The translations under genes were made by a program, and so were the position numbers. Below, piece after piece: positions 8,059 to 62,366 of a DNA stretch of 64,000 nucleotides. The first letter of the stretch is position 1, and each line of letters opens with the position of its first letter. The notes beneath the pieces are model-generated. The model had not been told where the DNA came from. It searched no databases and saw only the letters and a list, made by a program, of their open reading frames with translations. Location: sequence record NC_019410.1; one strand, written 5' to 3'.

Positions 8059-8091
8059 ACACTACGCTTTGGGTTCTTGTATTGTCAACAC
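8059..8091 (-). promoter_or_regulatory. sigma70-type promoter, very short leader
   Basis: GTGTTGACA-N18-TAGTGT; no TGGC box or GACGACAAC leader. Confidence 0.7.
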
Positions 8092-8092
8092 A

Positions 8093-8566
8093 TCACTTCA
8101 GGAGCTTGAGGGCGGGGGCGTGATATTTGAACCCCGCCTCGCTGATCGGCCCCACGCCCACGAAGGTGATGGTCGGCTTGCCGAACACCGTGCGGCCCGC
8201 GTCGAGGACGAGGGTCGCGCCGGCATGGTCGCGGAACCGCTCATAGAGGGCTTCCAACTCGGCGTTGGTCCCGGCGTGGAGCGCGATCTTCACGGCCGAC
8301 TGCGAGTAGCGGTATTGCCGCGCGATCCTGGGGAACCGCTCCATGGCGTCCCACCACGCATGGAGGTAGGCGTGGCCGGCCTGAGCCGCGAGCTTGCCCA
8401 GGTTGAGGGATTTCTCGTCCGGCTTGCGGCGGTTCTTGGCCACGGTCATCGCGTCGAGCGCTTCCTGGCTCACGACGGCGTAGAGGCGCAGTTCGGCCTT
8501 AGGCTTGCCGGCGAAGACCGCCATCAGAGAGTCCCAGGCGTTGCGCCAAGCGTCGATCACGTTCAT
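8093..8566 (-). CDS. pth2: peptidyl-tRNA hydrolase type 2 (Pth2)
   Basis: GKLAAQAGHA, VKIAL, LVLDAGRT, T.VGVGP. Confidence 0.85.
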   Translation of the reverse strand: MNVIDAWRNAWDSLMAVFAGKPKAELRLYAVVSQEALDAMTVAKNRRKPDEKSLNLGKLAAQAGHAYLHAWWDAMERFPRIARQYRYSQSAVKIALHAGTNAELEALYERFRDHAGATLVLDAGRTVFGKPTITFVGVGPISEAGFKYHAPALKLLK

Positions 8567-9006
8567 GAAAAGCGGCTTTCGTAGGAGGCCTCCAGGGCGA
8601 TCGCCGCGTCGAAGGCGACGTCGATGAGGTCCTCGTGCATGAGAACATCGAAGGAGCGGTCGACCCGGAGGGCGAACTGGGCTTCCATCGAGCGGTTGAA
8701 GGCCAGGAGGTCCTTGTGGAGCCCTGCCATGCGGTCCAGGAGCTTGATCGCGTAGACGTCCGGCCCGAAGGTCCCTCGCGTCTGATGCAGGCGCTTCTTG
8801 ACGTCGTTGATCGTCTCCCAGGACTTGACCTTCAAGTCCTCCATGAGGTCGGCCTGCTGCTCGACCCGGATCAGGTGACGCAGCAGCCGCCGGAGCCGGG
8901 CCTGGATTTGATCAGGCGGGGCCGACGGCGGAGGAGCGCGACACTCCTCCGCCTCGGTGGCGATCATCTGACGCGCCCGGTTGACGCAGTCGAGGATCGA
9001 AGCCAT
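8563..9006 (-). CDS. hypothetical protein
   Basis: Coupled overlaps on both sides. Confidence 0.7.
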   Translation of the reverse strand: MASILDCVNRARQMIATEAEECRAPPPSAPPDQIQARLRRLLRHLIRVEQQADLMEDLKVKSWETINDVKKRLHQTRGTFGPDVYAIKLLDRMAGLHKDLLAFNRSMEAQFALRVDRSFDVLMHEDLIDVAFDAAIALEASYESRFS

Positions 9007-9431
9007 CAGCCCTCGGCGGCCGGCGCTTCCGGCTCAGCGGTGGTCTTGCCCTTGCCCTTGCTCGCCGGCGCGGCCTGGGCTTCTTCCGCCGCCGGCTCGG
9101 CGATGGGCGCGGGGGCTTCCACCACCGGTTCGGCGTCCGCAGCCGCCTCGACCGGCGTGTAGTCGGCCTCGAACGCGGCCGGCTTCAGGATGGCGATCTC
9201 GTAGGTGTCCTCGCCGCGCGGGATGCGGACGATGTAGTCGTCCTGGGTCGCCGAGGCGATCTGGCCGTTGATCGGGACCAGGAGCTTGCCGACGGCGTCC
9301 TTGCCGACGTGCATGGTCCCCATGGCGGTGTAGCCCGAGTGCTGGGTCAGCCACGCCGGCAGGTCTTCCAGGCGCTGGAAGCTGTACTGGACAGCGTCCA
9401 CGGTCACCGGTTGGCGGATATACTGGGTCAT
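9006..9431 (-). CDS. phage hypothetical protein
   Basis: YIRQPVTVDAVQ ... DDYIV ... KPAAFEADY pattern; Ala/Glu/Pro-rich tail. Confidence 0.75.
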   Translation of the reverse strand: MTQYIRQPVTVDAVQYSFQRLEDLPAWLTQHSGYTAMGTMHVGKDAVGKLLVPINGQIASATQDDYIVRIPRGEDTYEIAILKPAAFEADYTPVEAAADAEPVVEAPAPIAEPAAEEAQAAPASKGKGKTTAEPEAPAAEG

Positions 9432-10030
9432 GCGGTCTCCTGCTGGAGGTTAGCCGGCGCCGGGATGGCGTCGGAAAGGGCTTGCTCGACCAGGACCAGG
9501 ATGTCCATGACGAGCTTGGGATTGAGGTCGGGCTCGGTGAGCGCGGCGGCCAGGGCGTTGATCCGGAACCACGTCGGGTCAGCGTGCGGGATCAGATTGA
9601 GATTGTGCAGGTGCAGCAGCGTCGAGCCGTGGGAGGCGGTCCGCTCCGAAAGCTCGCGCAGCACGCGGGCGCCGGCGAGTTGGTCGGCCAGGACCTTGAT
9701 CACGCTGCCCGAGGGAGCCAGGAGCAGGCGCATCCAGTCGCCGTTCGGATCGTCGGCTTGGCGCAGGTCCGGATGGTCCAGCGTCTTGCCCCAGATCACC
9801 TCGTGCGCCTTGGCGGCCAGCGAGCGGCGGCGGCGGGCGAGGTCTTCGGCGTCCTTGGCGGCGCGCAGGCTGGAAAGCGTCGTGGCGATCAACACCGAGG
9901 GAAAGAGCGCGACGACGAAGAACGCGGCGCGCTCAAGTGGCGAGGCGTGCGAAGCCACGATATTCATGGCCGTGCCGATCAGCACCGTCGGATAGATCAA
10001 GCCGCCGTGGCGCTGGATGAACGAGATCAT
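9428..10030 (-). CDS. hypothetical membrane protein
   Basis: Two N-terminal hydrophobic segments; first gene after a promoter element. Confidence 0.75.
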   Translation of the reverse strand: MISFIQRHGGLIYPTVLIGTAMNIVASHASPLERAAFFVVALFPSVLIATTLSSLRAAKDAEDLARRRRSLAAKAHEVIWGKTLDHPDLRQADDPNGDWMRLLLAPSGSVIKVLADQLAGARVLRELSERTASHGSTLLHLHNLNLIPHADPTWFRINALAAALTEPDLNPKLVMDILVLVEQALSDAIPAPANLQQETA

Positions 10031-10045
10031 GAAAAGGGCCTCCGG

Positions 10046-10104
10046 CGTTGTCGTCGAAGGCCCTTCTAGCGAGTCGGTGTCAGGCTGTCAACACATGTCA
10101 GCCA
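10046..10104 (-). promoter_or_regulatory. repeated promoter-leader element
   Basis: TGGC-N9-TTGACA-N17-TAGAAG-..-CGACGACAACG-GGAGG; spacer contains CGAGTCG (GANTC). Confidence 0.85.
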
Positions 10105-10107
10105 AGA

Positions 10108-13202: not shown

Positions 13203-14435
13203 CTAGCCCTTCACGCAGAGGACTTGCTTGAGGGTGTGGACGATGTCCACGAGGTCCTTCTGGGCCTCCATGACCGCGTCGATGTCCTTGTAGGCCATCG
13301 GGATTTCGTCGATCACGCCGGCGTCCTTGCGGCACTCCACGCCCTCGGTGGCCTTGATCTGGTCCTCCAGAGTGAAGGTCGCCTTGGCCTGGGTCCGCGA
13401 CATCGTCCGGCCCGCGCCGTGCGAGCACGAGCAGAACGAGTCCGCATTGCCCTTGCCGCGCACGATGTAGGACTTGGCCCCCATCGAGCCGGGGATGATC
13501 CCGAACTGGTCCTTCTGCGCCGACACCGCGCCCTTGCGGGTCACGAAGACCCACTCGTCGAAGTGGAATTCCTTCTGGACGTAGTTGTGGTGGCAGTTCA
13601 CCGCTTCCTTGTCCGTCTTGAACGGCGGCAGGCCCGACGCCCGCATGGCCTCCAGGACCCGGACCATCATCATCTCGCGGTTGATCCGCGCGAAGTCCTG
13701 GCCCCAGGCGACGGCTTCCACGTAGTCGTGGAACTCCGGCTCGCCTTCGCAGAGCCAAGCAAGGTCCTTGTCCAGCGGCTTGCGCCCGTCACGGCGCAGC
13801 ATCATCTCCTTGGCCTTCTCGATGAAGATGCGGCCGATGGTGTTGCCGACGCCGCGCGAGCCCGAGTGGAGCATCACCCAGACGCGCTGATCCTCGTCGA
13901 GGCAGACCTCGATGAAGTGGTTGCCGCCGCCCAGGGTGCCCAGTTGGACCACGCTGTTGGCGTTCTTCAGCGCCGGGTACTTCTCGCAGAGCTTGTCGAA
14001 CCGCGCCTCCAGGCCCGAATCGACCCACTTGCGCAGGATCGAGTTGGGGATGCCGCTGCGCCCGTTCCAGCCGCCCGACGGACCCGGCCCGCCGTGCGGG
14101 ACGGCGTGCTCGATCAGCGAGCGAAGCTTGGACAGGCTGTCGGGGAGGTCCGACGCGGTCAGGCTGGTGCGGACCGCCATCATGCCGCAGCCGATGTCGA
14201 CGCCGACGGCGGCCGGGATGATCGCGCCCTTGGTCGGGATCACCGAGCCCACGGTCGAGCCGATGCCCATGTGGACATCCGGCATCAGGGCGACGTGCGA
14301 GTGGATGAAGGGCAAGGCCGCGAGGTTGTGGGCCTGGACCTGAGCCGGTTGCTCGAAGTTCACGCCGCGAACCCAGGCCTTGATCACCCCGCCATTCCAG
14401 CCGTTGATCTCTTCGTAATGGGTCTCGGCGGACAC
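13203..14435 (-). CDS. rtcB: RtcB RNA ligase
   Basis: MPDVHMG, VGVDIGCGM, GTLGGGNHFIE, LHSGSRG, NCHHNY, IPGSMG, SHGAGR, DEIPMAYK. Confidence 0.97.
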   Translation of the reverse strand: MSAETHYEEINGWNGGVIKAWVRGVNFEQPAQVQAHNLAALPFIHSHVALMPDVHMGIGSTVGSVIPTKGAIIPAAVGVDIGCGMMAVRTSLTASDLPDSLSKLRSLIEHAVPHGGPGPSGGWNGRSGIPNSILRKWVDSGLEARFDKLCEKYPALKNANSVVQLGTLGGGNHFIEVCLDEDQRVWVMLHSGSRGVGNTIGRIFIEKAKEMMLRRDGRKPLDKDLAWLCEGEPEFHDYVEAVAWGQDFARINREMMMVRVLEAMRASGLPPFKTDKEAVNCHHNYVQKEFHFDEWVFVTRKGAVSAQKDQFGIIPGSMGAKSYIVRGKGNADSFCSCSHGAGRTMSRTQAKATFTLEDQIKATEGVECRKDAGVIDEIPMAYKDIDAVMEAQKDLVDIVHTLKQVLCVKG

Positions 14436-14451
14436 GGCGGGCTCCTTCTGT

Positions 14452-14501
14452 GGTGTCGTGATTTACGACTTTTGACCATGCTCCTCGGACGGTGTCAACA
14501 C
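14452..14501 (-). promoter_or_regulatory. promoter-leader element (variant) for rtcB
   Basis: GTGTTGACA-N17-TCAAAA..CACGACACC..AAGGAG; lies inside the 3' end of the upstream ORF. Confidence 0.55.
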
Positions 14502-14678
14502 TTCTTCAACGGCGGTGATCTGAATTTGCAGCAGACTGGCCGCCGGGTGGCTGGGCGGAAGAAGCGCCTCGGCCTGTTTCATCGCGTCCAGGGTGTCTTC
14601 CAGCGCGGCGCGGAAGGTGTTGCGCTGCTCGGTGGTGGCGCGGACGGCGGAGGGAAATTCGAAGATCATGGGGATCAC
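14463..14678 (-). CDS. hypothetical protein
   Basis: 71-aa helical ORF between terminator and rtcB. Confidence 0.55.
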   Translation of the reverse strand: MIPMIFEFPSAVRATTEQRNTFRAALEDTLDAMKQAEALLPPSHPAASLLQIQITAVEEVLTPSEEHGQKS

Positions 14679-16671: not shown

Positions 16672-16958
16672 CAGGCCGCGAGCCCGCGCTGCTTCAAGGC
16701 GACGATCTGCTCGATCTCCTTGAGGATGTGGTCCGACAGGCGGTCGGTCCGTTCCTTGATGCCGGCGGGGACGCCGATCTTGCACTGACCGATCTCGTGC
16801 AGGCGGTCGGAGACGGCCTTCAGGTCGATCAGGGTGTCGCTGATCAGCACCTCGGCGAGGCCGATGGCCTCGGTCTGGATGGCGGCGATCCGCTGGGCGG
16901 TGGTCTGCGCCGATTGGCCCGCGACGAGGGCCAGGGCGGCGTTGTTCTTCTGGGTCAT
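16671..16958 (-). CDS. hypothetical protein
   Basis: First gene after promoter element, AAGGAG SD. Confidence 0.8.
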   Translation of the reverse strand: MTQKNNAALALVAGQSAQTTAQRIAAIQTEAIGLAEVLISDTLIDLKAVSDRLHEIGQCKIGVPAGIKERTDRLSDHILKEIEQIVALKQRGLAA

Positions 16959-16969
16959 GGGGTCTCCTT

Positions 16970-17019
16970 CGTTGTCGTCGGGCGTGACTTCTAGTTGGGT
17001 TCCTGGAGGCTGTCAACAC
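16970..17019 (-). promoter_or_regulatory. repeated promoter-leader element
   Basis: GTGTTGACA-N17-TAGAAG-..-CGACGACAACG-AAGGAG. Confidence 0.85.
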
Positions 17020-17281
17020 TTTCGCTCACCGGCGCGGCGCCGTAGTGCGCGACCAGGACAAGCCGGGCGCCGCAGGCGACCAGCGCGCCGCGCGCGTCGT
17101 AGATCAGCCGTCCGGCCTCCTCGCCGTTCTTGTCCAGGATGATGGCCTCCCTGGCGTAGGTCGGCTTGCCGCTCTTGCCCCGCTGGATGCGGATCGGAGG
17201 ATCATCCGTGCCGCGCTTGGTGTTGCGGTCGATGACCTGCCGGTTGATGTTGAGGACGCAGGTCTTGCGGGTGATCTTCAT
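16991..17281 (-). CDS. phage hypothetical protein
   Basis: LNINRQVI..N.KRG..DPPI ... CGARL; stop TAG is the -10 box. Confidence 0.75.
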   Translation of the reverse strand: MKITRKTCVLNINRQVIDRNTKRGTDDPPIRIQRGKSGKPTYAREAIILDKNGEEAGRLIYDARGALVACGARLVLVAHYGAAPVSESVDSLQEPN

Positions 17282-17586: not shown

Positions 17587-19004
17587 ATCAGCGCTCCTTG
17601 GCTCGGATCGGCCGGCGCGTAGACGGCGCGGTTGATGGTGGTCTCCGGCTCGCCCGAGCGCTTGTTGGCGCCGTGACGCTTGATCGTGGCCCGGATGGCG
17701 TAGCGCTTGCCGGCCTCGGGACGGTACTTGCCGGTGTGGAAGTTCACCACCGCCGAGCCGTCATCGCAGCGGATGGCCACGATGCAGGTCGTCTCGCCGA
17801 AGTCGTTGGTGTAGAGGTTGGTCCGCACGACCTCGCCCACGAAGTCCACACGCTGGCCCTCGGCGGCGTCGAGGTGCTTGGCAGGCGGGCGCTGGGGAGC
17901 GTCGGCCTTCTTGCGGGCGTCCTCCTCGCGCTCCAGGGCGCGGCCGACCGACAGACCGACAGCGGCGACGATCACCCCGATGCGCTTGACCAGGACGAAA
18001 TCTTCCTGGGCGAGCACCATCTTGATGTTCTCGTGGAACGGATTGCCCGGCTTCAGCGAGCGGATGTAGTCGGTGAAGCCCTCGCGGTCGAATTCCGGAT
18101 CGAAGCCCTTGTAGGAGTCGATGATCTCCTGGTTGCGCTTGCGCTCGTAGTCCGACAGGCCATAGCCCCGGTTGCCGAACATCAGCAGGCCGACATGCTT
18201 GCGCGATTCCTCCTTGCTGTAGCCGCCGAACCGGCGAGCCACGCGGTACGAGGTCCGCAGGAGTTCGCCCAGGTCGACGTACTCCTCGCCCTTGCGCCAG
18301 CCGCCCGGATCGCCCTTGAAGTTGTTCAGGTCATCCCAGAACGACAGCATGCGGACCGGATCGGCCCCCATATAGGCTTTCAGGCACGAGGCCCCGATCA
18401 TCTTGATCCCGTCGGCGGTCTCGCAGACGAAGGTGTGTTTGCGGCGCTGGTTGACGCCGCAGTGGGCGCACTCGCCAGCGTGTACACGCATCCCTTCCAC
18501 GACGTCGTTGGCGGTCTTGTCGACCAGCTTGAGGTAGTGCCCCGTCTTCTCGGCGGCTTCGTAGATGCCCAGGACGCGGCCCTTCTCGCCGACCATCGGC
18601 GGAACCGACAGGGTGATCTCGATGCGGCGCACCACCATGGCCTCGTCGCTCAGATAGGGCGAGGGAATGTCGACCACCTTGCGCTCCAGGACCTCCAGGG
18701 TCTGGGCGCCGTGGGCGGCCCGCTTCTGGAGCTTGGCCAGCAGGCGCATGAAGCGTTCCTCGACGGCGAAGCCCATCATGAAGGTCAGGACGGCTTGGCC
18801 GTCGCGCACGCCTTCCTGGGCCTCCCACATGGCGGTCCGGTGAGCCTCGCGCTCCTGCTCGTCCTCGAAGATCGACACGCCCCTGGCGGTCACGACCTCG
18901 ACGCCGTCGACCAGCACGCTGGCCTGATCGGCGACCGTCTCGGGACGCTCACCGTAGGTTTCCAGCATGTAGTCCTGGTAGCTGCCTTCGAATTCGCCAA
19001 ACAT
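17583..19004 (-). CDS. hypothetical protein with Cys/His motif and C-terminal OB-fold-like domain
   Basis: CAHCG..QRRK.TFV...GASCL; C-terminal GQRV.FVGEV...ATIKRHG...ETTINR. Confidence 0.8.
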   Translation of the reverse strand: MFGEFEGSYQDYMLETYGERPETVADQASVLVDGVEVVTARGVSIFEDEQEREAHRTAMWEAQEGVRDGQAVLTFMMGFAVEERFMRLLAKLQKRAAHGAQTLEVLERKVVDIPSPYLSDEAMVVRRIEITLSVPPMVGEKGRVLGIYEAAEKTGHYLKLVDKTANDVVEGMRVHAGECAHCGVNQRRKHTFVCETADGIKMIGASCLKAYMGADPVRMLSFWDDLNNFKGDPGGWRKGEEYVDLGELLRTSYRVARRFGGYSKEESRKHVGLLMFGNRGYGLSDYERKRNQEIIDSYKGFDPEFDREGFTDYIRSLKPGNPFHENIKMVLAQEDFVLVKRIGVIVAAVGLSVGRALEREEDARKKADAPQRPPAKHLDAAEGQRVDFVGEVVRTNLYTNDFGETTCIVAIRCDDGSAVVNFHTGKYRPEAGKRYAIRATIKRHGANKRSGEPETTINRAVYAPADPSQGALI

Positions 19005-19017
19005 GATCGGCTCCTCT

Positions 19018-19075
19018 CGCTGTCGTGAGGGAGCTTGTACGGACTCATGCCGATGCTGTCAACACTCTAACGCCA
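19018..19075 (-). promoter_or_regulatory. repeated promoter-leader element
   Basis: TGGC-N9-TTGACA-N17-TACAAG-..-CACGACAGCG-AGAGGAG; GANTC in spacer. Confidence 0.8.
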
Positions 19076-21944: not shown

Positions 21945-22303
21945 TGGTCCGACACCTTCGCCAGTTGCTTTTCCAGTTCGGCGCGCAGTTCAGCGTCGCT
22001 CAGGCCCAGGCGCTCCTTCATGAACGCCACCGCCTCGGCGGTGGTCTCGAAGGAGCGGGTCTCGGCATCGGTGCTGTCGCGCAGGCCAAGGATTTCGATC
22101 ACGCCCCAGAACGTCGCCCAGGCGGTGGCGATCAAGGCCGCCAGCGTGATGGCGAAGCCGAAGTCGAACTGGCGCGCGGCGCTCAGTTCCCCCACCTCGA
22201 CCGCCGTCCAGGCCACCGCCACGAGGCTCACCGAGGTGAGGTGAAGCAGGGCGCTCGTGCGGGTGTGGGTCGGGCGGACGGTCAGGGTCATCTTGTCTTG
22301 CAT
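21941..22303 (-). CDS. membrane protein
   Basis: ATG 22303 after GAGGAG; two hydrophobic segments. Confidence 0.75.
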   Translation of the reverse strand: MQDKMTLTVRPTHTRTSALLHLTSVSLVAVAWTAVEVGELSAARQFDFGFAITLAALIATAWATFWGVIEILGLRDSTDAETRSFETTAEAVAFMKERLGLSDAELRAELEKQLAKVSDQ

Positions 22304-22319
22304 GAGGGTCTCCTCTGCG

Positions 22320-22376
22320 GTTGTCGTCGCCCGCCTCTTAGGACAAGGCCGCAGCCTTGTCAACACATTCAAGCCA
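22320..22376 (-). promoter_or_regulatory. repeated promoter-leader element
   Basis: TGGC-N9-TTGACA-N17-TAAGAG-..-CGACGACAAC. Confidence 0.85.
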
Positions 22377-24082: not shown

Positions 24083-24252
24083 CGCAGTAGCTCTCCGTCG
24101 GCGATCCGGATGTCGCTCAGGGGATAGTCCTGGAAGAAGGCGCGCAGCCGCTGGCGTAGCATCCCCTCGACAGCCTCGGCGTTGTTCAAGGTCTCGAAGA
24201 GGTCCTCGAACATCTGGCGCTCATTGGCGCGTAAGGGTCGGGTCTTCGGCAT
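24079..24252 (-). CDS. hypothetical protein
   Basis: ATG 24252 after AAGGAG and promoter element. Confidence 0.75.
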   Translation of the reverse strand: MPKTRPLRANERQMFEDLFETLNNAEAVEGMLRQRLRAFFQDYPLSDIRIADGELLR

Positions 24253-24264
24253 CGAGGTCTCCTT

Positions 24265-24322
24265 CGTTGTCGTCATGCGGCTTCTAGGTCGACTTTGCCG
24301 GATTGTCAACACATTCCAGCCA
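24265..24322 (-). promoter_or_regulatory. repeated promoter-leader element
   Basis: TGGC-N9-TTGACA-N17-TAGAAG-..-TGACGACAACG-AAGGAG. Confidence 0.85.
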
Positions 24323-27344: not shown

Positions 27345-27598
27345 GACTTGAGGCTCTGGCAGGCGAACGTGATCACGTCGCCGAGGGTGTTGAAATCCTC
27401 GGGGAACTGGACCGGCTCAGGGACGGCGAAGTCCTCCTCCAGGCACATCATCAACTCGATGATGTCCAGGCTGTCGAGGCCCAGATCATCTTCCAGCCGT
27501 AGCCCCTCGTCCATATCGTCGAGGGTGTACGACCGGTCGGTGATCGCATGGGCGTAGTCGAAGGTCGCCGCCTTGATCTCGTCGCGCGTGAAGGTCAC
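27341..27598 (-). CDS. acpP: acyl carrier protein
   Basis: LEDDLGLDSLDIIELMMCLEEDFAV with the phosphopantetheine DSL motif; FNTLGDVITF; acidic, 85 aa. Confidence 0.9.
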   Translation of the reverse strand: MTFTRDEIKAATFDYAHAITDRSYTLDDMDEGLRLEDDLGLDSLDIIELMMCLEEDFAVPEPVQFPEDFNTLGDVITFACQSLKS

Positions 27599-28329
27599 GG
27601 CTCTCCCCCTGGTGTCGTTTCGGCGCTTCTAGCCCTCCCAAGCAGAGCCGTCAACACATCAGCGCCACGCCAGACCCAGGATAGGCTCAGAACGAGGTCG
27701 CGGTCCTCATAGGCGGCGCTGCGCCCGGTGATCACCTTGATCGCCGAGAGCGGGCCAAACCGCCAGAAGACGACCGTGCGCGAGTCGTTGCGGCCGGGCA
27801 GGTGCTCCAGCAGCACGCGACGCTTGATCGCGAGGTGGCGCTGTTCCTTGTGGAGGACCAGGGCGATCTTGCATGTCGGATCGGACCCGAACCACCGGCG
27901 CCAGTAGCCCGGATTGTCGATGTTCTCGTAGAGCCGGCCGATCCGTTTGCTGACCGGGCGCAGGCCCGGCTCGCGCCGGCGCACGCTGAGCGGCGGGAAC
28001 GTGCAGGGCGGCCACTCGGCGAGCAAGCTCTGGCGCAGCCGGCGAAATTCCCAGGCCGGCATGGCGTTGTCCTTGGTGTTGTTGCACGCCACGCAGGCCG
28101 CCGCCAGATTGCTCTCGTGGTTCGATCCGCCCTCGGCCTTGGCCTCCAGGTGCTCGATCGTCACTTCGTCGGGCTCCAGCTTGCCGCCACCCCGGCCGAT
28201 CCGCCGGCGATAGGCCATCTGCCCCGTGCAATAGGTGCAGAGGCCGCCCGCCTCCAGGAAGAGGCGGTGGCGGCGGTTCGGCGCGGCGGGCGGTAGCGGG
28301 TCCTGGACCAGCACCTCAGATGAGGACAT
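27595..28329 (-). CDS. HNH endonuclease
   Basis: CTYC...TIEHL.AKAEGGSNHESNLAAAC.ACNNTK. Confidence 0.85.
   Translation of the reverse strand: MSSSEVLVQDPLPPAAPNRRHRLFLEAGGLCTYCTGQMAYRRRIGRGGGKLEPDEVTIEHLEAKAEGGSNHESNLAAACVACNNTKDNAMPAWEFRRLRQSLLAEWPPCTFPPLSVRRREPGLRPVSKRIGRLYENIDNPGYWRRWFGSDPTCKIALVLHKEQRHLAIKRRVLLEHLPGRNDSRTVVFWRFGPLSAIKVITGRSAAYEDRDLVLSLSWVWRGADVLTALLGRARSAETTPGGEP
27611..27667 (-). promoter_or_regulatory. repeated promoter-leader element (variant) for the ACP gene
   Basis: TGGC-N9-TTGACG-N17-TAGAAG-..-AACGACACC; embedded in HNH 3' end. Confidence 0.75.
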
Positions 28330-30229: not shown

Positions 30230-30813
30230 GCCTCGATCTCCTCGAACCGCCCATCCATGAATTCGGCCTCGCGCCGACCCCACATCTGGCCCTCGGCGTC
30301 GAGGTAGGTCAGCAGGGTCTCGTCATCGAGCACCGGGGTCTCGCACTGGATGCGGATCGTCCCGACCAGGGCGTATTCGCCGCCGCGCTTCCTGTGGCGG
30401 AAGCGCCGCATGCCGCGCGGAAGCTCCGCCAGGAAGGCCTTCAGGGCGTCCGCCACCTTGGCGACGCCGTGCGGGAAGTGCGAGCCCGGCCCGCGCACCC
30501 ATTGATAGATCGTCGCCAGGGCGAAGCGCCCGGCGGCGATCTCGCCCGTGGGGTCCTTGCGGATCATGTCCGGCGCGTAGTCTTCGAGATAGTTCGTCCC
30601 GAGGATCGCCATGCAGCGGGCCTCCTCCACCGAGGTCGGCAGACGCAGGTGATCGCGATCCAGGCGGTCGGCCTCGGCGAGCGACTTGATCACCCCGACC
30701 AGGATCGCCGCCTTCTCGGCGTGCCACTGCCGTCCGCCCGGCTCTGGGGCGCGCTCGGCGTGGTAGAGGTGGTAGTCCAGTATCTCGTGGACGTCTTCGC
30801 TCTGTCGGGACAT
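30226..30813 (-). CDS. hypothetical protein with C-terminal DUF1653-like domain
   Basis: FRHRKRGGEY.LVG...TY...WGR...EFMDGRFE. Confidence 0.75.
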   Translation of the reverse strand: MSRQSEDVHEILDYHLYHAERAPEPGGRQWHAEKAAILVGVIKSLAEADRLDRDHLRLPTSVEEARCMAILGTNYLEDYAPDMIRKDPTGEIAAGRFALATIYQWVRGPGSHFPHGVAKVADALKAFLAELPRGMRRFRHRKRGGEYALVGTIRIQCETPVLDDETLLTYLDAEGQMWGRREAEFMDGRFEEIEA

Positions 30814-30824
30814 AGGGTTCCTTC

Positions 30825-30874
30825 CGTTGTCGTCACCCGCGACACTAGATGGTCGGAGGTGTGACTGTCAACAC
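30825..30874 (-). promoter_or_regulatory. repeated promoter-leader element
   Basis: GTGTTGACA-N18-TAGTGT-..-TGACGACAACG-GAAGGA. Confidence 0.8.
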
Positions 30875-30875
30875 T

Positions 30876-31391
30876 TCACGTCAGAGCTAGACGGCGACGA
30901 TAGAACAGGCGCCGGCCGTTGAAGAACAGACGGATGCGGAATTCCTCGTCGAGGGTCCCGATGTCGAGGCTAAAGCCCAGGAGGCCCAGGCTGACATAGG
31001 CATGGCGCCCGAAGCTCCCCGGAATGGCGTCCATGCCGCCGGCGACGAACCGGATGAGCCAGAGCCAGCCCAGGTCGAATCGCTTGAAGCCCTGCCATTC
31101 GATCGAGCGCCAGGAGAAGCCGCCGCCCAGCAGGGTGATGTCGATGTCCAGGTTCCAGCCGTCGGCCAGCGGATCGCGGCGGCGGTGGTAGCGCAGGCGA
31201 AAGAAGCCGCCGTCGAGGTCGAAGTTCGGGATCGCGCCAAAAGCCAGACGGCGCAGACGCGCCAGGACATAGCCGACCGGGAAGATCACCAGGGCGTAGA
31301 GACTCAGGAGGAAGACCAGGGCCACGGCGCACCACAGGCCATGCCAGAAGAACCCGAGCATCATCCCAAGCTTTGGCGAATGGTCGGGCAT
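30876..31391 (-). CDS. membrane protein
   Basis: N-terminal hydrophobic helix. Confidence 0.65.
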   Translation of the reverse strand: MPDHSPKLGMMLGFFWHGLWCAVALVFLLSLYALVIFPVGYVLARLRRLAFGAIPNFDLDGGFFRLRYHRRRDPLADGWNLDIDITLLGGGFSWRSIEWQGFKRFDLGWLWLIRFVAGGMDAIPGSFGRHAYVSLGLLGFSLDIGTLDEEFRIRLFFNGRRLFYRRRLALT

Positions 31392-40783: not shown

Positions 40784-40963
40784 CTACTCCTTGATCTCGA
40801 CGCTCTTGGGCGGATTGGGATGAGGAACGAAGACCAGGGCCACGTCCTGACCGCCGGTATAGCGCGTGCGTCGGCTATAGAGCCAGCCGCCTTCCACCGC
40901 CAACCGCTCGGTCACCTGACCATCGGCTTCGTCGATCTTTTCCCACTTGGACTTCTTAGCCAT
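40784..40963 (-). CDS. 59-aa protein missed by the ORF track
   Basis: MAKKSKWEKIDEADGQVTERLAVEGGWLYSRRTRYTGGQDVALVFVPHPNPPKSVEIKE; GAGGGG SD; fills the gap after the leftward promoter. Confidence 0.8.
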   Translation of the reverse strand: MAKKSKWEKIDEADGQVTERLAVEGGWLYSRRTRYTGGQDVALVFVPHPNPPKSVEIKE

Positions 40964-40984
40964 CTTCCCCTCGAATTTGGCGGC

Positions 40985-41013
40985 ACCCTAGAGGAGCGTT
41001 CGAGTGTTGACAA
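40985..41013 (-). promoter_or_regulatory. leftward promoter of the divergent hub
   Basis: TTGTCA (41013-41008)-N17-TAGGGT (40990-40985). Confidence 0.6.
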
Positions 41014-41047
41014 GCACCAATGTCGCTGGCTTTCGAGTGTTGACAAG
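40999..41047. repeat. 16-bp direct repeat TTCGAGTGTTGACAAG (40999-41014, 41032-41047)
   Basis: Identical copies 33 nt apart at the strand switch. Confidence 0.9.
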
Positions 41048-41085
41048 TCCGGTGCTCGTCTATAGGGGAGACCGGGACGACAACG
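41027..41085 (+). promoter_or_regulatory. rightward promoter-leader element of the divergent hub
   Basis: TGGC-N9-TTGACA-N17-TAGGGG-..-GACGACAACG-AAAGGAG. Confidence 0.85.
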
Positions 41086-41098
41086 AAAGGAGCCTGCC

Positions 41099-41407
41099 AT
41101 GCGCTATGTGCTCGACTATGCCGACGACCGGGACAACCCGGTCTATACCGATTTCCAGGCCGGCGACCGCAAGGCGGCCATCGCCAAGGCCAAGCGCCTG
41201 CTCGCCAAGGCGATCAAGACCGTCGATTTCTCGCTCCACGGGGCCTACATCTTCGTCGATCCGACGGGCGTCGCCCGCGACGTCGACGACATGATCCCGT
41301 TCGGCATGCTGAGCACGATGGCCTACGCCAGCATCGTCACCCCGTCGATGATCTCGTTCGACGACCGCGACGCCAAGGCGGCGATCGCCGCGAGGCTCGC
41401 CCAATGA
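41099..41407 (+). CDS. hypothetical protein
   Basis: First rightward gene, AGGAG SD. Confidence 0.8.
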   Translation: MRYVLDYADDRDNPVYTDFQAGDRKAAIAKAKRLLAKAIKTVDFSLHGAYIFVDPTGVARDVDDMIPFGMLSTMAYASIVTPSMISFDDRDAKAAIAARLAQ

Positions 41408-42420: not shown

Positions 42421-42428
42421 GAGGACCC

Positions 42429-43299: not shown

Positions 43300-43554
43300 A
43301 TGCTGACCAAGGACGAGATCACCTTCGCGGGCCTGATCAAGGCCATGGAGGACGCCCGACGCACCGCCAAGGCGGCGGGCGATCTCGTCAGCACGGCCGA
43401 GATCGACCGCTGGTTCAAGGAACACGCGCCGATCATCCGGGAGGTCCGCGACAAGGCCGAGGCCGACGAATTCGACGCTGGCGCGAGAGTGTTGACAGCC
43501 TCTGAGGAAGGGGCTAAAGACACCCTCGACGACAGCGAAAGGAGCCTGCCTTGA
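43300..43554 (+). CDS. hypothetical protein
   Basis: 3' end runs through a promoter element. Confidence 0.65.
   Translation: MLTKDEITFAGLIKAMEDARRTAKAAGDLVSTAEIDRWFKEHAPIIREVRDKAEADEFDAGARVLTASEEGAKDTLDDSERSLP
43479..43537 (+). promoter_or_regulatory. repeated promoter-leader element
   Basis: TGGC-N9-TTGACA-N17-TAAAGA-..-CGACGACAGCG-AAAGGAG. Confidence 0.85.
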
Positions 43555-46612: not shown

Positions 46613-46671
46613 TGGCGCGAAAGTGTTGACAGCCTGAAGGGACTCCTCTACACCCACGCTCGACGACAACG
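46613..46671 (+). promoter_or_regulatory. repeated promoter-leader element
   Basis: TGGC-N9-TTGACA-N17-TACACC-..-CGACGACAACG-AGAGGAG; GANTC at 46641-46645 and 46603-46607. Confidence 0.85.
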
Positions 46672-46683
46672 AGAGGAGTTCCC

Positions 46684-48444
46684 ATGGCCGAGACCATGTC
46701 CCTGAGTTTCCGGATCGAAGGCGCCGCTCTGGTGGAGCGGGCGCGCGATCGCGTCATCGAAGGTAACTGGGAGCACGGCCTGCGCATCCTGGTCGAGGGC
46801 CTGCACGGCATGTCCTACGAACTCGCGATCGACATCCTGCTTGGCAAGCACACCCTGGGCGGCTGGTCCTCGGACCCCGAGGGCGTCTATCTCACCGACC
46901 AGGACCCGGAGGACGAGACTTTCAAGCGCTACAAGGAAACCCTCGACTACCAGTTCGCCGGCGTCTTCAAGCTGGACGACGGCCGGATCATGCGCCCCTA
47001 CGCGGTGGTCGACAGCTTCTCCAAGATCGACTTCGACTCTAGGGTCCGCTTCCTGCGGCTGGCCCAAGGCTCGGACCCGGTGTTCTCGCGCCCCAAGCGC
47101 TATCACGACCCCCGCGCCGAGATCAACGGCGAGGAGATCGACTGGGCCTATCGCGCCCTGCACTACGCCGACGAGCCGACCCAGGACATCGTCCGTCTGG
47201 TCCGCATGGAGGGCTTCCACCCCACGATCCGCGCGGCGGTCCTGTTCAAGGAAGTCCGCGACTATCCCAAGCTCCTGCTCCCGAAGGTCGAGACCGACGC
47301 CCAGAAGGCCGTCGACGTGGCGATCAAGGCCCAGCGTGGTCTCTCCAAGCGCGGGCACGTCTACGAGTATGGCGCTGGTCAGGACTTCGACAAGGAGCAC
47401 TACAAGACCACCATGGGGATCGATCAGGTCCCCACCGCCTGGACCGTGCGCAACCCGAAATACGTCGATCCCGACGCCAAGTTCGTGAAGGACACCCTGG
47501 CCGAGATCGACGGCGACAAGCGCTCGGCGCCGGCCGGTGATTACGCCGGCGCCATGAACCGGATGATCAAGGATGAGATGGACGGCGGCATGGACATCAG
47601 CGCGGCCGTCGCCATGACCCAGGCCAAGATGGCGCTGCTGGGCGGCATGGCCGAGGACCCCGAGCAGCGCCTGCGGGCGATCAACGACGCCTACGCCGCC
47701 AAGTACGAGAAGGCCGAGGGCCGCAGCGTCGAGGAGTACCGCAAGGCCATCATCGCCCAGGCCGGCGATGATTTCTTTGATCTCGCGTACACGGATGTGA
47801 ACGGCAAGGACGTCGTCCTGAAGGTCCCGACCGCGCCGTTCGAGCAATGGGCGCTCTGGCGCACGGCCGGCTCCCACCTCGCCAAGCCCTGGAAGCGGGT
47901 GACCTACACCGGCTTCAAGACGTTCGGCGATGATCCCTATCACACCGACTGGGTGCTGGGCGCTGGGCTCAATCCTGAGGATTGGCCGATCATCGAGGCC
48001 GACAACCCGCCGCTCCACAAGGCCGCCTGGGACAAGCGCTTCCGGCTGGCCGAGGAGAAGCTGGGCGGCAACATGCGCGTCCTGCTCGGCAAGGGCTTCG
48101 TGACCGGCAAGATCGTGATGCTCAAGCCGGGCGAGGCCCTGTCACCGGGTGAGATCGGCGTGATCCGCAACGCCGGCCCCGACTACGTCCAGGCCGCCCA
48201 GAGCGCGATCGAGCACAACACCGCCTTGATCTGCGAGAACGGCGGCAGCGTCGCCCACCTCGTGGTCGAGTACCTGGACAAGCCCCTGCGCCTGACCCGG
48301 ATCGAGAACGCGCGCAAGATTTTCAAGGACGGCATGACCGTCTACCTCGACTTTGACAAGTCGACGCGAGAGATCGCCAAGGGTGGCCTGGGGCCGAGCC
48401 CTGCCGATCTTGGCCTCGACACGGAATGGGAGATTTTCGAATGA
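46684..48444 (+). CDS. large protein with C-terminal PEP-utiliser (phospho-His swivelling) domain
   Basis: C-terminus GKG.VTGKIV...GEIGVIRNAGPDY...ALICENGGSVAHLVV...NARKIFKDGMTVYLD. Confidence 0.7.
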   Translation: MAETMSLSFRIEGAALVERARDRVIEGNWEHGLRILVEGLHGMSYELAIDILLGKHTLGGWSSDPEGVYLTDQDPEDETFKRYKETLDYQFAGVFKLDDGRIMRPYAVVDSFSKIDFDSRVRFLRLAQGSDPVFSRPKRYHDPRAEINGEEIDWAYRALHYADEPTQDIVRLVRMEGFHPTIRAAVLFKEVRDYPKLLLPKVETDAQKAVDVAIKAQRGLSKRGHVYEYGAGQDFDKEHYKTTMGIDQVPTAWTVRNPKYVDPDAKFVKDTLAEIDGDKRSAPAGDYAGAMNRMIKDEMDGGMDISAAVAMTQAKMALLGGMAEDPEQRLRAINDAYAAKYEKAEGRSVEEYRKAIIAQAGDDFFDLAYTDVNGKDVVLKVPTAPFEQWALWRTAGSHLAKPWKRVTYTGFKTFGDDPYHTDWVLGAGLNPEDWPIIEADNPPLHKAAWDKRFRLAEEKLGGNMRVLLGKGFVTGKIVMLKPGEALSPGEIGVIRNAGPDYVQAAQSAIEHNTALICENGGSVAHLVVEYLDKPLRLTRIENARKIFKDGMTVYLDFDKSTREIAKGGLGPSPADLGLDTEWEIFE

Positions 48445-50480: not shown

Positions 50481-50529
50481 GCGTTGACAACACTCTCGCG
50501 CCAACATAGAACCACCCTCGACGACAACG
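50481..50529 (+). promoter_or_regulatory. repeated promoter-leader element
   Basis: GCGTTGACA-N17-TAGAAC-..-CGACGACAACG-AGGAGG. Confidence 0.85.
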
Positions 50530-50540
50530 AGGAGGCTTCG

Positions 50541-50924
50541 ATGAAGCTCGCGACCCAAGACCGCACCGACCCGCGCCTGAACGCGCGCTATCGCCTCGCC
50601 AAGGCGGTGTTCTACTATGGCGGCCCGCACGAGTACCCGATCCACCTGAACGACTGGTGGAACGAGGTGACGCCGGCCGACGTCGAGGACCGCATCTCCG
50701 AACTCTGCCGCGAACTCTCCAAGCTGTCGGGTCAGACCCTGGCGCCGGCGACCTTCTACGAGCGGATGAAGCTGGGCTTCGTCGACCTCCCGGAAGTGAA
50801 GGACGAGGACTTCGCCACCCTGTCGGAGACGACCCGCAACAACCTGCTCGCCATGCAGGACCGCTTCTCGGTCCACGGGAGCGGCTTCATGCTCTACTGG
50901 AACATCGTCAAAGAGGAGGCCTGA
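50541..50924 (+). CDS. hypothetical protein
   Basis: ATG 50541 after AGGAGG (track start 50484 falls in the promoter). Confidence 0.8.
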   Translation: MKLATQDRTDPRLNARYRLAKAVFYYGGPHEYPIHLNDWWNEVTPADVEDRISELCRELSKLSGQTLAPATFYERMKLGFVDLPEVKDEDFATLSETTRNNLLAMQDRFSVHGSGFMLYWNIVKEEA

Positions 50925-51986: not shown

Positions 51987-52044
51987 TGGCGTTCTTGTGT
52001 TGACAAGGCCAGCGCCGCTGGCCTAGAACGTCGTGGACGACAAC
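51987..52044 (+). promoter_or_regulatory. repeated promoter-leader element
   Basis: TGGC-N9-TTGACA-N18-TAGAAC-..-GACGACAAC-AGGAGG. Confidence 0.85.
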
Positions 52045-52054
52045 AGGAGGGACC

Positions 52055-52411
52055 ATGCCGCTCTACGACTTTCCGACCGGACCGACCACGATGGCGGACA
52101 TCGAGGCGTTCGTCGCCGGCGCCCAGGCGGTGGTGACCGCCCAACTGGCCAAGGCCTTTCCCGGCGTGTCCGCGCCGGTCCTGGAGATCGCGCCGGTTCA
52201 CCCGAGCAGCCAGTTCGCCAAGATCGTCGCGGTCGACGCCAGCCAGCGCTCGGCCTGGGCGTTCGTCCGACTGGAGAACGGCCTGATCTACAAGCCCTCG
52301 TCGTGGAAGGTGCCGGCCAAGCATGCGCGTGGCACGATCCACACCGCCGCGCACGGCGCCGAGTACGTCGACTGGACCGGCCCGCGCTACGTCAAGGACC
52401 TGCGTCGATGA
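52055..52411 (+). CDS. phage hypothetical protein
   Basis: SAWAFV..ENG.IYKP.SWK.PAKHARG.I...WTGP.Y. Confidence 0.8.
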   Translation: MPLYDFPTGPTTMADIEAFVAGAQAVVTAQLAKAFPGVSAPVLEIAPVHPSSQFAKIVAVDASQRSAWAFVRLENGLIYKPSSWKVPAKHARGTIHTAAHGAEYVDWTGPRYVKDLRR

Positions 52412-59696: not shown

Positions 59697-59755
59697 TGGC
59701 GTTAGAACGTTGACAGCCTCGGCGTGATGTCATAAAAGCCTCCTCGACGACAACG
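59697..59755 (+). promoter_or_regulatory. repeated promoter-leader element
   Basis: TGGC-N9-TTGACA-N17-TAAAAG-..-CGACGACAACG-AGGAGG. Confidence 0.88.
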
Positions 59756-59766
59756 AGGAGGGCCAC

Positions 59767-60186
59767 ATGGCTTACGCAATTCCGGACCTGAGCACGTTCA
59801 CGTTCCACGATCCCAAGGTCGAACGGTTCGCCAAGGCGATGATCTCGACGATCGAGACCGCCCAGACCATCCTCACGGCCTTCGCCAACGATCTCGCCGA
59901 CAATCCTCTTCAGGCGTTCGAGCATAGCTACGGCGCCAAGATGGCCGCCGCCCACAGGGACGTCGCCAAGGGGCTGCTCAACGAAGTCCTCGACGCGCTG
60001 CTGCACGGTCAGGACAAGACCTGGGCCTACATCGGCCAGGACCTGCGCGAGCGGCTGATGTATCGCGTGATCTACGCGGCCTCGAACCCGCCGCGCTCGA
60101 CCAACGTCGAAGGCAACGACATGGCCCGCTTCGTCCTGCGCGCCGAGGCCGACATGCTCGACCGCATGACCAAGAGCCGCTTCTGA
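59767..60186 (+). CDS. hypothetical protein
   Basis: First gene after promoter. Confidence 0.8.
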   Translation: MAYAIPDLSTFTFHDPKVERFAKAMISTIETAQTILTAFANDLADNPLQAFEHSYGAKMAAAHRDVAKGLLNEVLDALLHGQDKTWAYIGQDLRERLMYRVIYAASNPPRSTNVEGNDMARFVLRAEADMLDRMTKSRF

Positions 60187-61099: not shown

Positions 61100-61158
61100 T
61101 GGCGTTCAAGTGTTGCCAAAGCTGATCTGATCAGCTAGAACCCTCGCCGACGACAACG
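61100..61158 (+). promoter_or_regulatory. repeated promoter-leader element
   Basis: TGGC-N9-TTGCCA-N17-TAGAAC-..-CGACGACAACG-AGGAGG. Confidence 0.85.
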
Positions 61159-61168
61159 AGGAGGCCCC

Positions 61169-61363
61169 ATGCCGCACCTGAGCAAGACGCCGTTCGACTT
61201 CGACTTCACCAGTGACGCTTTGGCGGCAACGCTGGAATTCGAGCGCAACACGACCGAGTTCTACCGCTACGAGACAGTCTTCACATCCGGTCGTGCGGCA
61301 ACTCACGTTCTCGTCATGGAAGAAGACGGGAATTTCGTCGGCTTCGTCTCGGGTGAAGCCTGA
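61169..61363 (+). CDS. hypothetical protein
   Basis: First gene after promoter. Confidence 0.7.
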   Translation: MPHLSKTPFDFDFTSDALAATLEFERNTTEFYRYETVFTSGRAATHVLVMEEDGNFVGFVSGEA

Positions 61364-61755
61364 TGCAGCACCTCGACCCCCGCATCGGCTACCTGAACTC
61401 GGGCGTCTACTACGCCTTCGTCCACGGCTACGACAAGCCCGAGACGCGCGGCACGCTCGAAGAGGTCGAGATCGCCCTGGGCCTGCGCAAGCCGGCGATC
61501 GCGAAGGCGCCGGCGTTCGAAGAGACCCGCACCCGCTCGGGCGGCTGGAAGCGCACCTTCGGCTCGATCAACGGCAAGCCCCTGACCCTGACGATCAGCG
61601 AGGCCGACAGCGTCTGCGCCGACGTCGAGTGCGGTCGGTTCGGCTGCTCACTGTCGCTGCTCTGCGACTTCGGGACGGTCGAGGAAGACGGCCCGCACGT
61701 GCGCCAGTCCACCATCGACCAGATGGTCGAGTGGGCGCTGACCAAGGGCTGGTAG
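61363..61755 (+). CDS. hypothetical protein
   Basis: Coupled overlap. Confidence 0.7.
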   Translation: MQHLDPRIGYLNSGVYYAFVHGYDKPETRGTLEEVEIALGLRKPAIAKAPAFEETRTRSGGWKRTFGSINGKPLTLTISEADSVCADVECGRFGCSLSLLCDFGTVEEDGPHVRQSTIDQMVEWALTKGW

Positions 61756-61989
61756 ATGAGCCGCATCCGTGTCATCGACCGCGACGGGTTCATGCAGGGC
61801 TGGGTCGACGCCCGCGTCGGCCTGCCGACCTATTCTGGCCCCGTCACCCGCTGGACCGAGAAGGGCTCGTTCTGGACCACCGGAGCCGACGGCGAGGAGC
61901 GCCTTTGGAAGGCCGGCAACCACCAGCCCTGCGTCTACAAGAGCAAGCTCCGCAAGAGCGACATCATCCACGCGCGACGGGAGGGCTAA
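61756..61989 (+). CDS. hypothetical protein
   Basis: Abuts upstream stop. Confidence 0.65.
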   Translation: MSRIRVIDRDGFMQGWVDARVGLPTYSGPVTRWTEKGSFWTTGADGEERLWKAGNHQPCVYKSKLRKSDIIHARREG

Positions 61990-61990
61990 C

Positions 61991-62308
61991 ATGAGCCTGC
62001 TGGCCATCTATTTGACGGGCGCGGCGCTCACCGGCGCGGCGACGGCCGTCTACCTCTTCAAGGTCCGGGCGCCGGCGACCAAGGAGACCTACACCACCAC
62101 CTGGGGCTATGTCGAAACCGACGACGTCAACGAGACCGGCAACCACCTGGGGGCGATCCTCCTGATGGCGCTCTTCTGGTTCGTCATGGTTCCGATGGGG
62201 ATCGTCATGGGCCTCTGGCATCTGCTGGTCCGCGCCGTAGACAAGGCTTGGCGCCGCCGCACGTCGCGCCGCGAGAAGACGCACGTCGGCACCCATCGCT
62301 ATCTGTGA
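61991..62308 (+). CDS. membrane protein
   Basis: Two hydrophobic segments. Confidence 0.7.
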   Translation: MSLLAIYLTGAALTGAATAVYLFKVRAPATKETYTTTWGYVETDDVNETGNHLGAILLMALFWFVMVPMGIVMGLWHLLVRAVDKAWRRRTSRREKTHVGTHRYL

Positions 62309-62324
62309 TCGCCGCCAGCCCGGC

Positions 62325-62366
62325 TGGCTTCAGTGTGTTGACGGCGCGTCGCTCGCCCGCTAAGAA
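62325..62366 (+). promoter_or_regulatory. promoter element without GACGACAAC leader
   Basis: TGGC-N9-TTGACG-N17-TAAGAA. Confidence 0.75.

Follow-up and report, generated by a model that had tools for sequence, protein, structure and literature searches.

The 64,000-nucleotide (nt) stretch of record NC_019410.1 analyzed here, called the window below, corresponds with 100% identity to positions 124001-188000 of CcrKarma (JX100811.1), a 222-kb lytic phiCbK-like siphophage (Dolichocephalovirinae, Shapirovirus). It consists of two divergent arms of small genes, nearly all of them hypothetical, one running leftward from ~40.9 kb and the other rightward from ~41.0 kb. Both arms carry copies of a promoter-leader cassette with the layout TGGC-N6-GTG-TTGACA-N17/18-TAGAA(C/G)-N6-8-(C)GACGACAAC-(0-7 nt)-GGAGG-(~5 nt)-start, a family which we refer to as class I. 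Conserved composite early promoters are already known from large lytic phages; what is new here is the anatomy of the two extra boxes, namely an invertible module over the -35 (the upstream box) and a box at the predicted transcription start (the leader box).

A profile hidden Markov model (HMM) built from the cassette copies recovers 17 full-length copies in the window (E 5e-9 to 3e-16), ten on the minus strand (10109-37380) and seven on the plus strand (41022-61168). Across the whole Karma genome the HMM finds 22 full cassettes, all within record positions 114,855-195,450, and zero in the structural, lysis, tRNA and replication modules. All cassettes lie on the coding strand, and the start codon that they predict is the annotated one in 16 of the 17 copies, the exception being gp199. 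Compared with shuffles preserving dinucleotides, TTGACA-N16-19-TARAA is matched 8 times against 0.00 expected, CGACGACAAC has 9 exact matches against 0.28, and TGGC-N6-GTGTTG occurs 15 times exactly and once with a mismatch, against 3.2 expected at no more than one mismatch. All 15 exact matches of this last module sit at cassette promoters and none was found elsewhere in the window, while the 13 exact matches of GACGACAAC are each on the coding strand and beside a promoter. Five further sites are partial (1896-, 8091-, 14501-, 41004+ and 62335+). The full copies, with HMM scores, and then the partial ones are as follows, in window coordinates.

10028..10104, minus strand: full class I copy before gp170, 54.4 bits; TGGC 10104-10101, -35 10091-10086, -10 TAGAAG 10068-10063, GACGACAAC 10055-10047, ATG 10030; the leader contains a 9-bp hairpin and a T-run
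16956..17029, minus strand: full copy before gp185, TGAGC replacing TGGC, 39.7 bits; -35 at 17016, -10 TAGAAG 16993-16988, box 16979-16971, ATG 16958
19002..19075, minus strand: full copy before gp188, 48.3 bits; TGGC 19075, -35 19062, -10 TACAAG, variant box CACGACAGC 19027-19019, ATG 19004
22301..22376, minus strand: full copy before gp195, 40.4 bits; box 22328-22320, flanked by GCGG/CCGC in place of CCTCG/CGAGG, ATG 22303
24250..24322, minus strand: full copy before gp199, 48.7 bits
26146..26217, minus strand: full copy with exact consensus, adjoining the ArdC-like antirestriction gene gp203, 51.7 bits; ATG 26148
27596..27667, minus strand: full copy before gp208 (acyl carrier protein), 34.2 bits; -35 TTGACG, box AACGACACC, GTG start 27598
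30811..30884, minus strand: full copy before gp216 of Karma, without TGGC, 34.6 bits; 18-nt spacer, -10 TAGTGT, box 30834-30826, ATG 30813
32978..33051, minus strand: full copy before gp220, 55.0 bits; box 33001-32993, ATG 32980
37301..37376, minus strand: full copy with degenerate box GACACAACGAC, heading gp230-gp229-gp228, 33.5 bits; a terminator hairpin lies upstream
41027..41101, plus strand: full copy before gp236, first promoter of the rightward arm, 46.2 bits; ATG 41099
43479..43553, plus strand: full copy before gp245, 46.4 bits; box GACGACAGC, TTG start 43551
46613..46686, plus strand: full copy before gp251, 50.6 bits; ATG 46684
50481..50543, plus strand: variant B copy before gp258, upstream box absent, 46.5 bits; between -35 and -10 stands ACACTCTCGCGCCAACA, the upstream box in reverse complement (TGGCGCGAGAGTGTTG, minus strand, 50503-50488)
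51987..52057, plus strand: full copy before gp262, 47.2 bits; 18-nt spacer, ATG 52055
59697..59769, plus strand: full copy before gp280, 56.6 bits; an 8-bp anti-Shine-Dalgarno/Shine-Dalgarno hairpin around the box
61100..61171, plus strand: full copy before gp284, 52.3 bits; -35 TTGCCA
14433..14514, minus strand: degenerate copy before gp180 (RtcB-like), a pattern match below HMM detection; GTGTTGACA and the box-like CACGACACC present, -10 poor, TGGC absent
8048..8091, minus strand: promoter part only, before gp166; GTGTTGACA-N18-TAGTGT, ATG 8050
1855..1896, minus strand: promoter part only, before gp156 (DUF1643), 10.3 bits; GCGTTGACA-N17-GCAAAT, ATG 1857
62325..62427, plus strand: promoter part only, before gp288, 12.3 bits; TGGC-N6-GTG-TTGACG-N17-TAAGAA, followed by a 58-nt leader without box
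40961..41013, minus strand: leftward promoter of a divergent pair, before gp235 and the GcrA-like gp234; TTGTCA-N17-TAGGGT, where TTGTCA is the other strand of the palindromic GTGTTGACAAG (41004-41014); no leader box

The layout bears on the annotation of gp199 (24079-24369, minus strand). The record places its start at 24369, before the gene's own promoter and in overlap with gp200; the cassette predicts the ATG at 24252 instead, giving 57 amino acids. In the divergent region 40961-41101 a single palindromic -35 (GTGTTGACAAG / CTTGTCAACAC) is shared. It serves the leftward operon of gp235 and the GcrA-like gene, and 33 bp separate it from the -35 of the first rightward class I promoter downstream.

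An earlier note, made from the letters of this DNA, had listed 20 copies of one layout, and each of its 20 coordinates does carry a GTGTTGACA-type -35 on the strand claimed. The copies at 8059, 14452 and 62325 are promoter parts without GACGACAAC. TGGC, a part of the layout it gave, is lacking at 16970, 30825 and 50481, also at 8059 and 14452. The distance from the -10 to the leader box, put at 6-10 nt, measures 6-8 nt, and the list omits the partial copies at 1896(-) and 41004(+). Free variation of the spacers is indeed seen in variant A, the arrangement with the box upstream; in 11 of 56 aligned copies, however, the spacer holds a conserved inverted upstream box, and the 6-8 nt preceding the leader box show a preference for CCTC.

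The alignment of 56 copies was drawn from Karma, Rogue and BL10: the HMM gave 22 hits in Rogue and 19 in BL10 at E <= 1e-3, and 18 and 16 of these, respectively, entered at 30 bits or more. The family consensus is ..GTGTTGACAgc-N..-ccTAgAag. In 54/56 copies TTGACA is exact, with G or A as the next letter; the -10 begins with TA in all 56 and reads TAGAA in 33; GTG is present in 43/56, TGGC in 40/56 and exact GACGACAAC in 51/56, and the spacer between the hexamers is 17 or 18 nt in all window copies. The consensus of the Caulobacter housekeeping sigma factor RpoD (sigma-73) is TTGaCgS / GCtANAWC (cited in PMC8144410), and the -35, the -10 and the spacing of the cassettes all match it. The family -10 ends in C or G, as in Caulobacter, whereas the E. 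coli type ends in T. The housekeeping sigma proposed in the earlier note therefore fits, with the family closer to the Caulobacter RpoD consensus than to the E. coli TATAAT. A scan for E. coli-type promoters with T required at -7 gave 0 sites in 8-28 kb because of that very demand, the family -10 ending in C/G, and such a scan is uninformative as a test of the cassettes. A sigma-54 promoter (TGGCAC-N5-TTGC) was rejected on inspection of the alignment, where TGGC is 2 nt too far from TTG and TTGAC replaces TTGC. So was a GcrA/CcrM-dependent promoter: the motif of this system is the GANTC methylation site, best as YGAKTCK, near the -35 or -10, and GANTC is found in only 6/56 elements and at no fixed place. 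Host RNA polymerase with RpoD would thus recognize TTGACA, the 17-18 nt spacer and the Caulobacter-type -10 GCTAGAAC/G, and recognition of the early promoters would need no phage protein. The TGGC-N6-GTG and CGACGACAAC flanks that the phage cassettes carry fall outside the Caulobacter RpoD consensus.

The spacing from the -10 to the leader box is constant at 6-8 nt; that from the box to the start codon ranges over 19-25 nt. In two of the partial copies the ATG follows the -10 closely, 7 nt after it in gp156 (DUF1643) and 8 nt in gp166, and judging by this spacing the two mRNAs are probably leaderless. The DUF1643 gene of CcrColossus has the same arrangement, with an open frame from an ATG 7 nt after the -10, and the N-termini of the two DUF1643 proteins are conserved (MTTAP in Karma, MTAP in Colossus). 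Because the leaderless ATGs of gp156, gp166 and the Colossus gene sit there, we infer that transcription starts ~7 nt after the -10, which in class I would be the G or A of CGACGACAAC. The coding sequence of gp156 itself opens with ATGACGACAGC, so that the box is at the start site despite the absence of a leader, and no exact leader box was found before internal cistrons in the window. Being fixed to the -10 and present in leaderless gp156, the leader box appears to be a part of transcription initiation or of the 5' end, not of general ribosome binding. With transcription starting 6-8 nt after the -10, the leader box would be the initial transcribed sequence, and the mRNA would carry a U-poor leader of 19-25 nt with a strong GGAGG Shine-Dalgarno sequence. 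Leader and promoter together would give immediate, high expression of ~140 small genes in two divergent arms, and the start-site box would act as a second control site or set initiation and promoter escape. The Colossus DUF1643 gene, gp195 of that phage, seems to be annotated 31 codons short, the leaderless ATG being at record 158042 (minus strand). Literature matches for the 9-mer of the leader box are mostly primers for polymerase chain reaction on 16S. The form GACGACA(A/G)C (e.g. 43528-43536, 19019-27) is complementary to a conserved stretch of 16S rRNA, and its G variant would pair perfectly with proteobacterial 16S, both of which we take to be probably coincidence.

Eleven of the 56 aligned copies (variant B) have no upstream TGGC and carry as spacer ACACTCTCGCGCCAACA, which is the upstream box TGTTGGCGCGAGAGTGT in reverse complement. 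TGGC is present upstream in 40 of the 45 other copies and in 0 of the 11 with the inverted spacer box, so the two placements of the box (-48..-36, or inverted at -29..-13) are mutually exclusive, and both cover the TTG of the -35. The centre of the flip is the A of TTGACA, in the middle of the near-palindrome GTGTTGACAACAC. Variant B spacers are nearly identical among copies, and the gp280 promoter is of variant A in Karma and of variant B in its Rogue and BL10 orthologues. A box which tolerates inversion around the -35 is unlikely to be an UP-type polymerase contact; since the module flips and yet covers the TTG of the -35, a protein competing with sigma region 4 fits. In 185,579 species genomes TGGC-N6-GTGTTGACA-N16-18-TAGAA has 34 matches, near the chance level, among them one conserved Paraburkholderia locus, and in the Caulobacterales of that set the upstream box joined to a consensus promoter has zero matches. 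A host-type upstream element was rejected on this ground. We infer that TGGC-N6-GTG and the leader box are phage-specific control sites outside the host promoter code. The upstream box would be the operator of a protein, probably phage-encoded, that switches the class off or retunes it at the transition from early to middle transcription.

Full cassettes number 20 in phiCbK and 19 in Ccr29, and Rogue and BL10 also have ~20 each. Comparison of ten orthologous promoters of Karma and Rogue that share their downstream gene gives 93% identity in the boxes against 68% outside them (Fisher p = 8.5e-16), and the first 65 nt of coding sequence are ~74% identical in a looser set of 22 pairs. This difference between boxes and remaining positions points to purifying selection on the boxes and to no residue of recent copying, in accordance with what the earlier note had proposed. 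The cassette family is conserved across at least two genera of phiCbK-like phages. In a pattern scan of IMG/VR only loci of Karma, Rogue and CcrBL10 obtained HMM scores, and in the ~85 other contigs with the exact pattern, none of them HMM-scoring, the matches are solitary sites of the chance type or belong to one conserved locus that is unrelated. CcrColossus, which infects the same host, carries 23 copies of (A/G)GAGTTGACAG(A/C)CGGC in 100 kb; no Karma-type modules were found in Colossus and no Colossus-type ones in Karma. Elements that are uniform within a genome and different between genera on one host argue for a phage-encoded reader.

Transcription in the relative phiCbK is known from an RNA sequencing time course, in which 41% of genes peak by 15 min (McLaughlin 2023, PMC10688885), among them tgrL (phiCbK gp216), which is early and highly expressed with its peak at 15 min (PMC10688885). 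In phiCbK the class I cassette in front of the operon gp218-gp217-gp216, at 156574-156507, immediately follows a terminator hairpin, and Karma gp228, behind the copy at 37301-37376, is the orthologue of tgrL. As tgrL is early and its cassette insulated by a terminator, at least this copy is taken to be an active early promoter, and the coordinated early regulon of the earlier note is in this way indirectly supported. Class I territory covers, by our own count, ~140 of the 353 Karma genes, a proportion near 41% that is suggestive only.

From these results we are inclined, by a little more than even judgement, to regard the cassettes as strong early promoters for the host sigma factor, with a standard leader and phage-specific control sites that probably include a shut-off operator. 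Several observations weigh against this reading. The temporal class is known for one operon, and that in phiCbK. The candidate reader at hand, TgrL, an early transcription factor, does not qualify: hits above 9 bits of its published matrix YNCAACCNNNRSKNG, from chromatin immunoprecipitation sequencing (McLaughlin 2023, PMC10688885), fail to mark the promoters in the Karma genome, 2 of 139 falling within 80 bp of a class I -35. Variant B may represent a promoter subtype of its own instead of a flipped operator. Colossus has a weak TGRC ~10-12 nt before its -35, given which the upstream box could partly be a polymerase contact. A hairpin with the leader box in its loop can be folded in about half the copies (mean z -0.98, n=25), the pairing being mostly a property of the consensus and covariation weak. 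Three further proteins encoded in the early arms are candidates for DNA binding: gp198 (weak winged helix), gp282 (weak TrmB-like) and gp234, which is GcrA-like. A bolder version of the operator reading, which we consider possible and on the whole doubtful, would take the upstream box, the -35 flank and the start-site box for operators of one phage protein that clamps ~20 early promoters at once. It draws on a shared GTTGNC core in the sequences themselves, GTTGGC at -50, GTTGAC at -36 and GTTGTC on the other strand from +4 to +9. If so, the protein would co-evolve with its sites, as the sites of Colossus differ, and there would be a genome-wide early shut-off switch in a lytic phage, with an operator working either way round a palindromic -35.

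The operator reading has to be compared with one that dispenses with any trans factor, in which both boxes contact host RNA polymerase directly and help the phage to outcompete host promoters, the upstream one as an UP-like or extended -35 element and the leader box as an initial transcribed sequence favouring start choice and fast escape. As such contacts would, the boxes adjoin the -35 and the predicted start with constant spacing; in T4 and T5, conservation at strong early promoters likewise takes in upstream and transcribed regions, and the promoters of the promoter-early stem-loops (PeSLs) of T4-type phages have a conserved AT-rich upstream region. Besides its weak TGRC, Colossus also has a GACGAT-type box (GACGAY) after the -10 in 7 of its 23 copies. 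Polymerase contacts, however, need a position and an orientation, and here the two placements of the box interchange at one orthologous locus. The composite is moreover absent from all Caulobacter genomes sampled, two phage genera on one host have different flanks, and a second promoter class of the same phage has GTCGTGAATC at that place, for which reasons we find direct contact unlikely as the whole explanation. The mobile-cassette explanation, according to which recombination or gene conversion keeps PeSL-like elements uniform and their main role is the shuffling of small genes, has in its favour the near identity of the variant B spacers, the switch of one orthologous promoter between variants A and B, and a gene replacement whose beginning coincides with a leader end: from 61164, right after the gp284 leader, phiCbK and Ccr29 have other sequence. 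This is the single block end of 16 between Karma and phiCbK that falls inside an element, against ~0.8 expected from elements making up 5% of the sequence, and the comparison with Ccr29 adds no further one. PeSL-type shuffling was rejected, as indel ends with respect to both phages fall away from the elements. The variant A spacers differ freely around fixed boxes, which is the mark of selection and not of homogenization, and most stem-loops are weak and have no T-run, terminator-like sites being not above chance. We therefore give mobility as the main role very little credence. In Ccr29 an insertion with a plus-strand gene is flanked by a 294-bp direct duplication (window 22402-22695) that ends 22 bp from the promoter at 22.4 kb, and the genes that open the rightward arm (window 41276-42469) are rearranged in tandem.

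A third possibility is that the leader box acts in RNA as a 5'-end element bound by a nuclease, an RNA-binding protein or some component of the ribosome, with the hairpin controlling translation or stability of the first cistron. By prediction the mRNA opens with the 9 nt of the box, and a strong Shine-Dalgarno sequence follows after 0-7 nt. The stretch of 6-8 nt from the -10 to the box frequently reads CCTC(C), the complement of that sequence. In the copies which fold, the loop contains the box and the 3' arm the Shine-Dalgarno sequence; five fold at z < -2.5. Two variants are compensatory, GGGCCTYC/GGAGGCCC and GCGG/CCGC. The complementarity of the box to 16S rRNA noted above would also fit such a role. 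Exchange of the 5' arms among 43 non-redundant copies, on the other hand, changes the mean from -8.33 to -7.67 kcal/mol (p = 0.03), a weak covariation, and the 5' arm precedes the predicted start, so that the promoter's own transcripts cannot form the hairpin and only read-through transcripts could. The box tracks the -10 and not the start codon, is coding sequence in the leaderless gp156 mRNA, and is not found in exact form before internal cistrons. Rfam has no family at or above the gathering threshold on either strand of the 64 kb. An RNA hairpin was rejected as the reason for the leader box, and we hold action in RNA to be improbable. The hairpin may, with weak support, mask or terminate upstream read-through transcripts. 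A hairpin with a T-run occurs within the window in the copy at 10028-10104 only, and the predicted "rho-independent terminators" of the depositors at window 10036-10063 (minus strand) and record 188951-188978 (plus strand) are class I leader hairpins, each of them downstream of the -10 and ahead of the following gene's start codon. A class I variant B promoter at record 191530-191607 has no Shine-Dalgarno sequence and a conserved hairpin with a 10-bp stem (TGTCCGAAAT..ATTTCGGACA) in a ~57-nt leader before gp296, present also in Rogue and BL10; either a small RNA or a leader under regulation may be involved.

No earlier description of the motif was found in the genome paper (Gill 2012), in the paper on CtrA in these phages or in the full-text literature, of whose coverage subscription journals are not part; Gill 2012 mentions promoters once. 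The statement of the earlier note that the extra boxes match no described element thus stands for the literature, Rfam, the TgrL matrix and the host genomes. Outside class I, a second promoter family of the form (T)GTCGTGAATC-TTGACA-N17-TAnnnn lies in the structural, tRNA and replication modules, at the following positions.

Second promoter family, positions and strands in the Karma record: 30599+, 47517+, 53249+, 56915+, 71946+, 87072-, 94142-, 116276+, 206322+

In this second family a GANTC (CcrM) site, GAATC, abuts the -35; written as NGANTCN it is AGATTCA, the lowest-ranked site for the host GcrA. Karma encodes a GcrA-like protein (window 40228-40776, Pfam GcrA 5e-25) and DNA methylases. 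The family may represent a middle/late class. In phiCbK the gp005 and gp018 promoters in the terminal repeat are CtrA-dependent (Mascolo 2022, PMC9437464), and the terminal repeats of Karma are at 1-10254. The phage thus seems to have at least three promoter classes, one CtrA-dependent and two for sigma-73, which can be compared against the published RNA sequencing time course. Although phiCbK is the standard phage of the Caulobacter cell-cycle model, it has had no promoter map, and the family gives exact coordinates for ~20 early transcription units with ~40% of the genes. The cassettes also correct gene starts and two "terminators" in database records, the invertible upstream box and the start-site box offer handles on the factor that ends early transcription, and core promoter and leader make a compact, strong expression signal for Caulobacter genetics.

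The nearest described counterpart of the Karma cassettes are the PeSLs of T4-type phages, in which a consensus early promoter, an upstream region and a stem-loop are repeated (Arbiol 2010, PMC2839356; Comeau 2014, PMC4122927), and which sit among ORFans and mediate modular shuffling (PMC2839356, PMC4122927). Both are numerous short composites with a host-sigma promoter, placed between unknown small genes in the variable part of a large lytic phage, and a repeated host-sigma promoter in an ORFan-rich variable region is just what the 22 full copies at 114.8-195.4 kb represent. The PeSL upstream region is AT-rich, whereas that of Karma is TGGC-N6-GTG and can be inverted into the spacer; the PeSL hairpin is a separate terminator with a G/C tract, whereas that of Karma overlaps the start site and the Shine-Dalgarno sequence; and PeSL indels end at the elements, where indel ends between Karma and its relatives are not enriched. 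A fixed box at the transcription start, as in the Karma cassettes, does not figure in the PeSL description considered.

The leader box invites comparison with the SAS and ESAS of Cluster K mycobacteriophages, the former 3-7 bp before start codons and the latter a 17-bp inverted repeat (Pope 2011, PMC3203893, where the stoperators of Cluster A mycobacteriophages, i.e. the L5 gp71 sites, are also mentioned). Like SAS, it is a phage-specific, asymmetric repeat in one orientation at or near the Shine-Dalgarno sequences of non-structural genes; both recur in several subclusters in front of genes from different families and are missing from the host genome. SAS are, however, tied to translation starts, while the Karma box lies 19-25 nt before the start codon, keeps its place relative to the -10 and is confined to genes directly behind a promoter; the ESAS inverted repeat has no counterpart. 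Stoperators are numerous short asymmetric sites, oriented with transcription and bound by one phage repressor, and one L5 site overlaps a -35. By analogy, this model is mechanistically the closest to what we suggest for the upstream box, with the difference that stoperator phages are temperate and their repressor is known, whereas phiCbK-like phages are lytic and their sites are only at promoters. In the early promoters of T4 and T5 the consensus extends upstream of the -35 and into the transcribed region, in the service of host takeover, and as in the Karma cassettes it exceeds the two hexamers. Those extensions are A/T-rich polymerase contacts of fixed orientation, whereas the extensions of Karma are G/C-rich, specific to the genus and, in one case, invertible.

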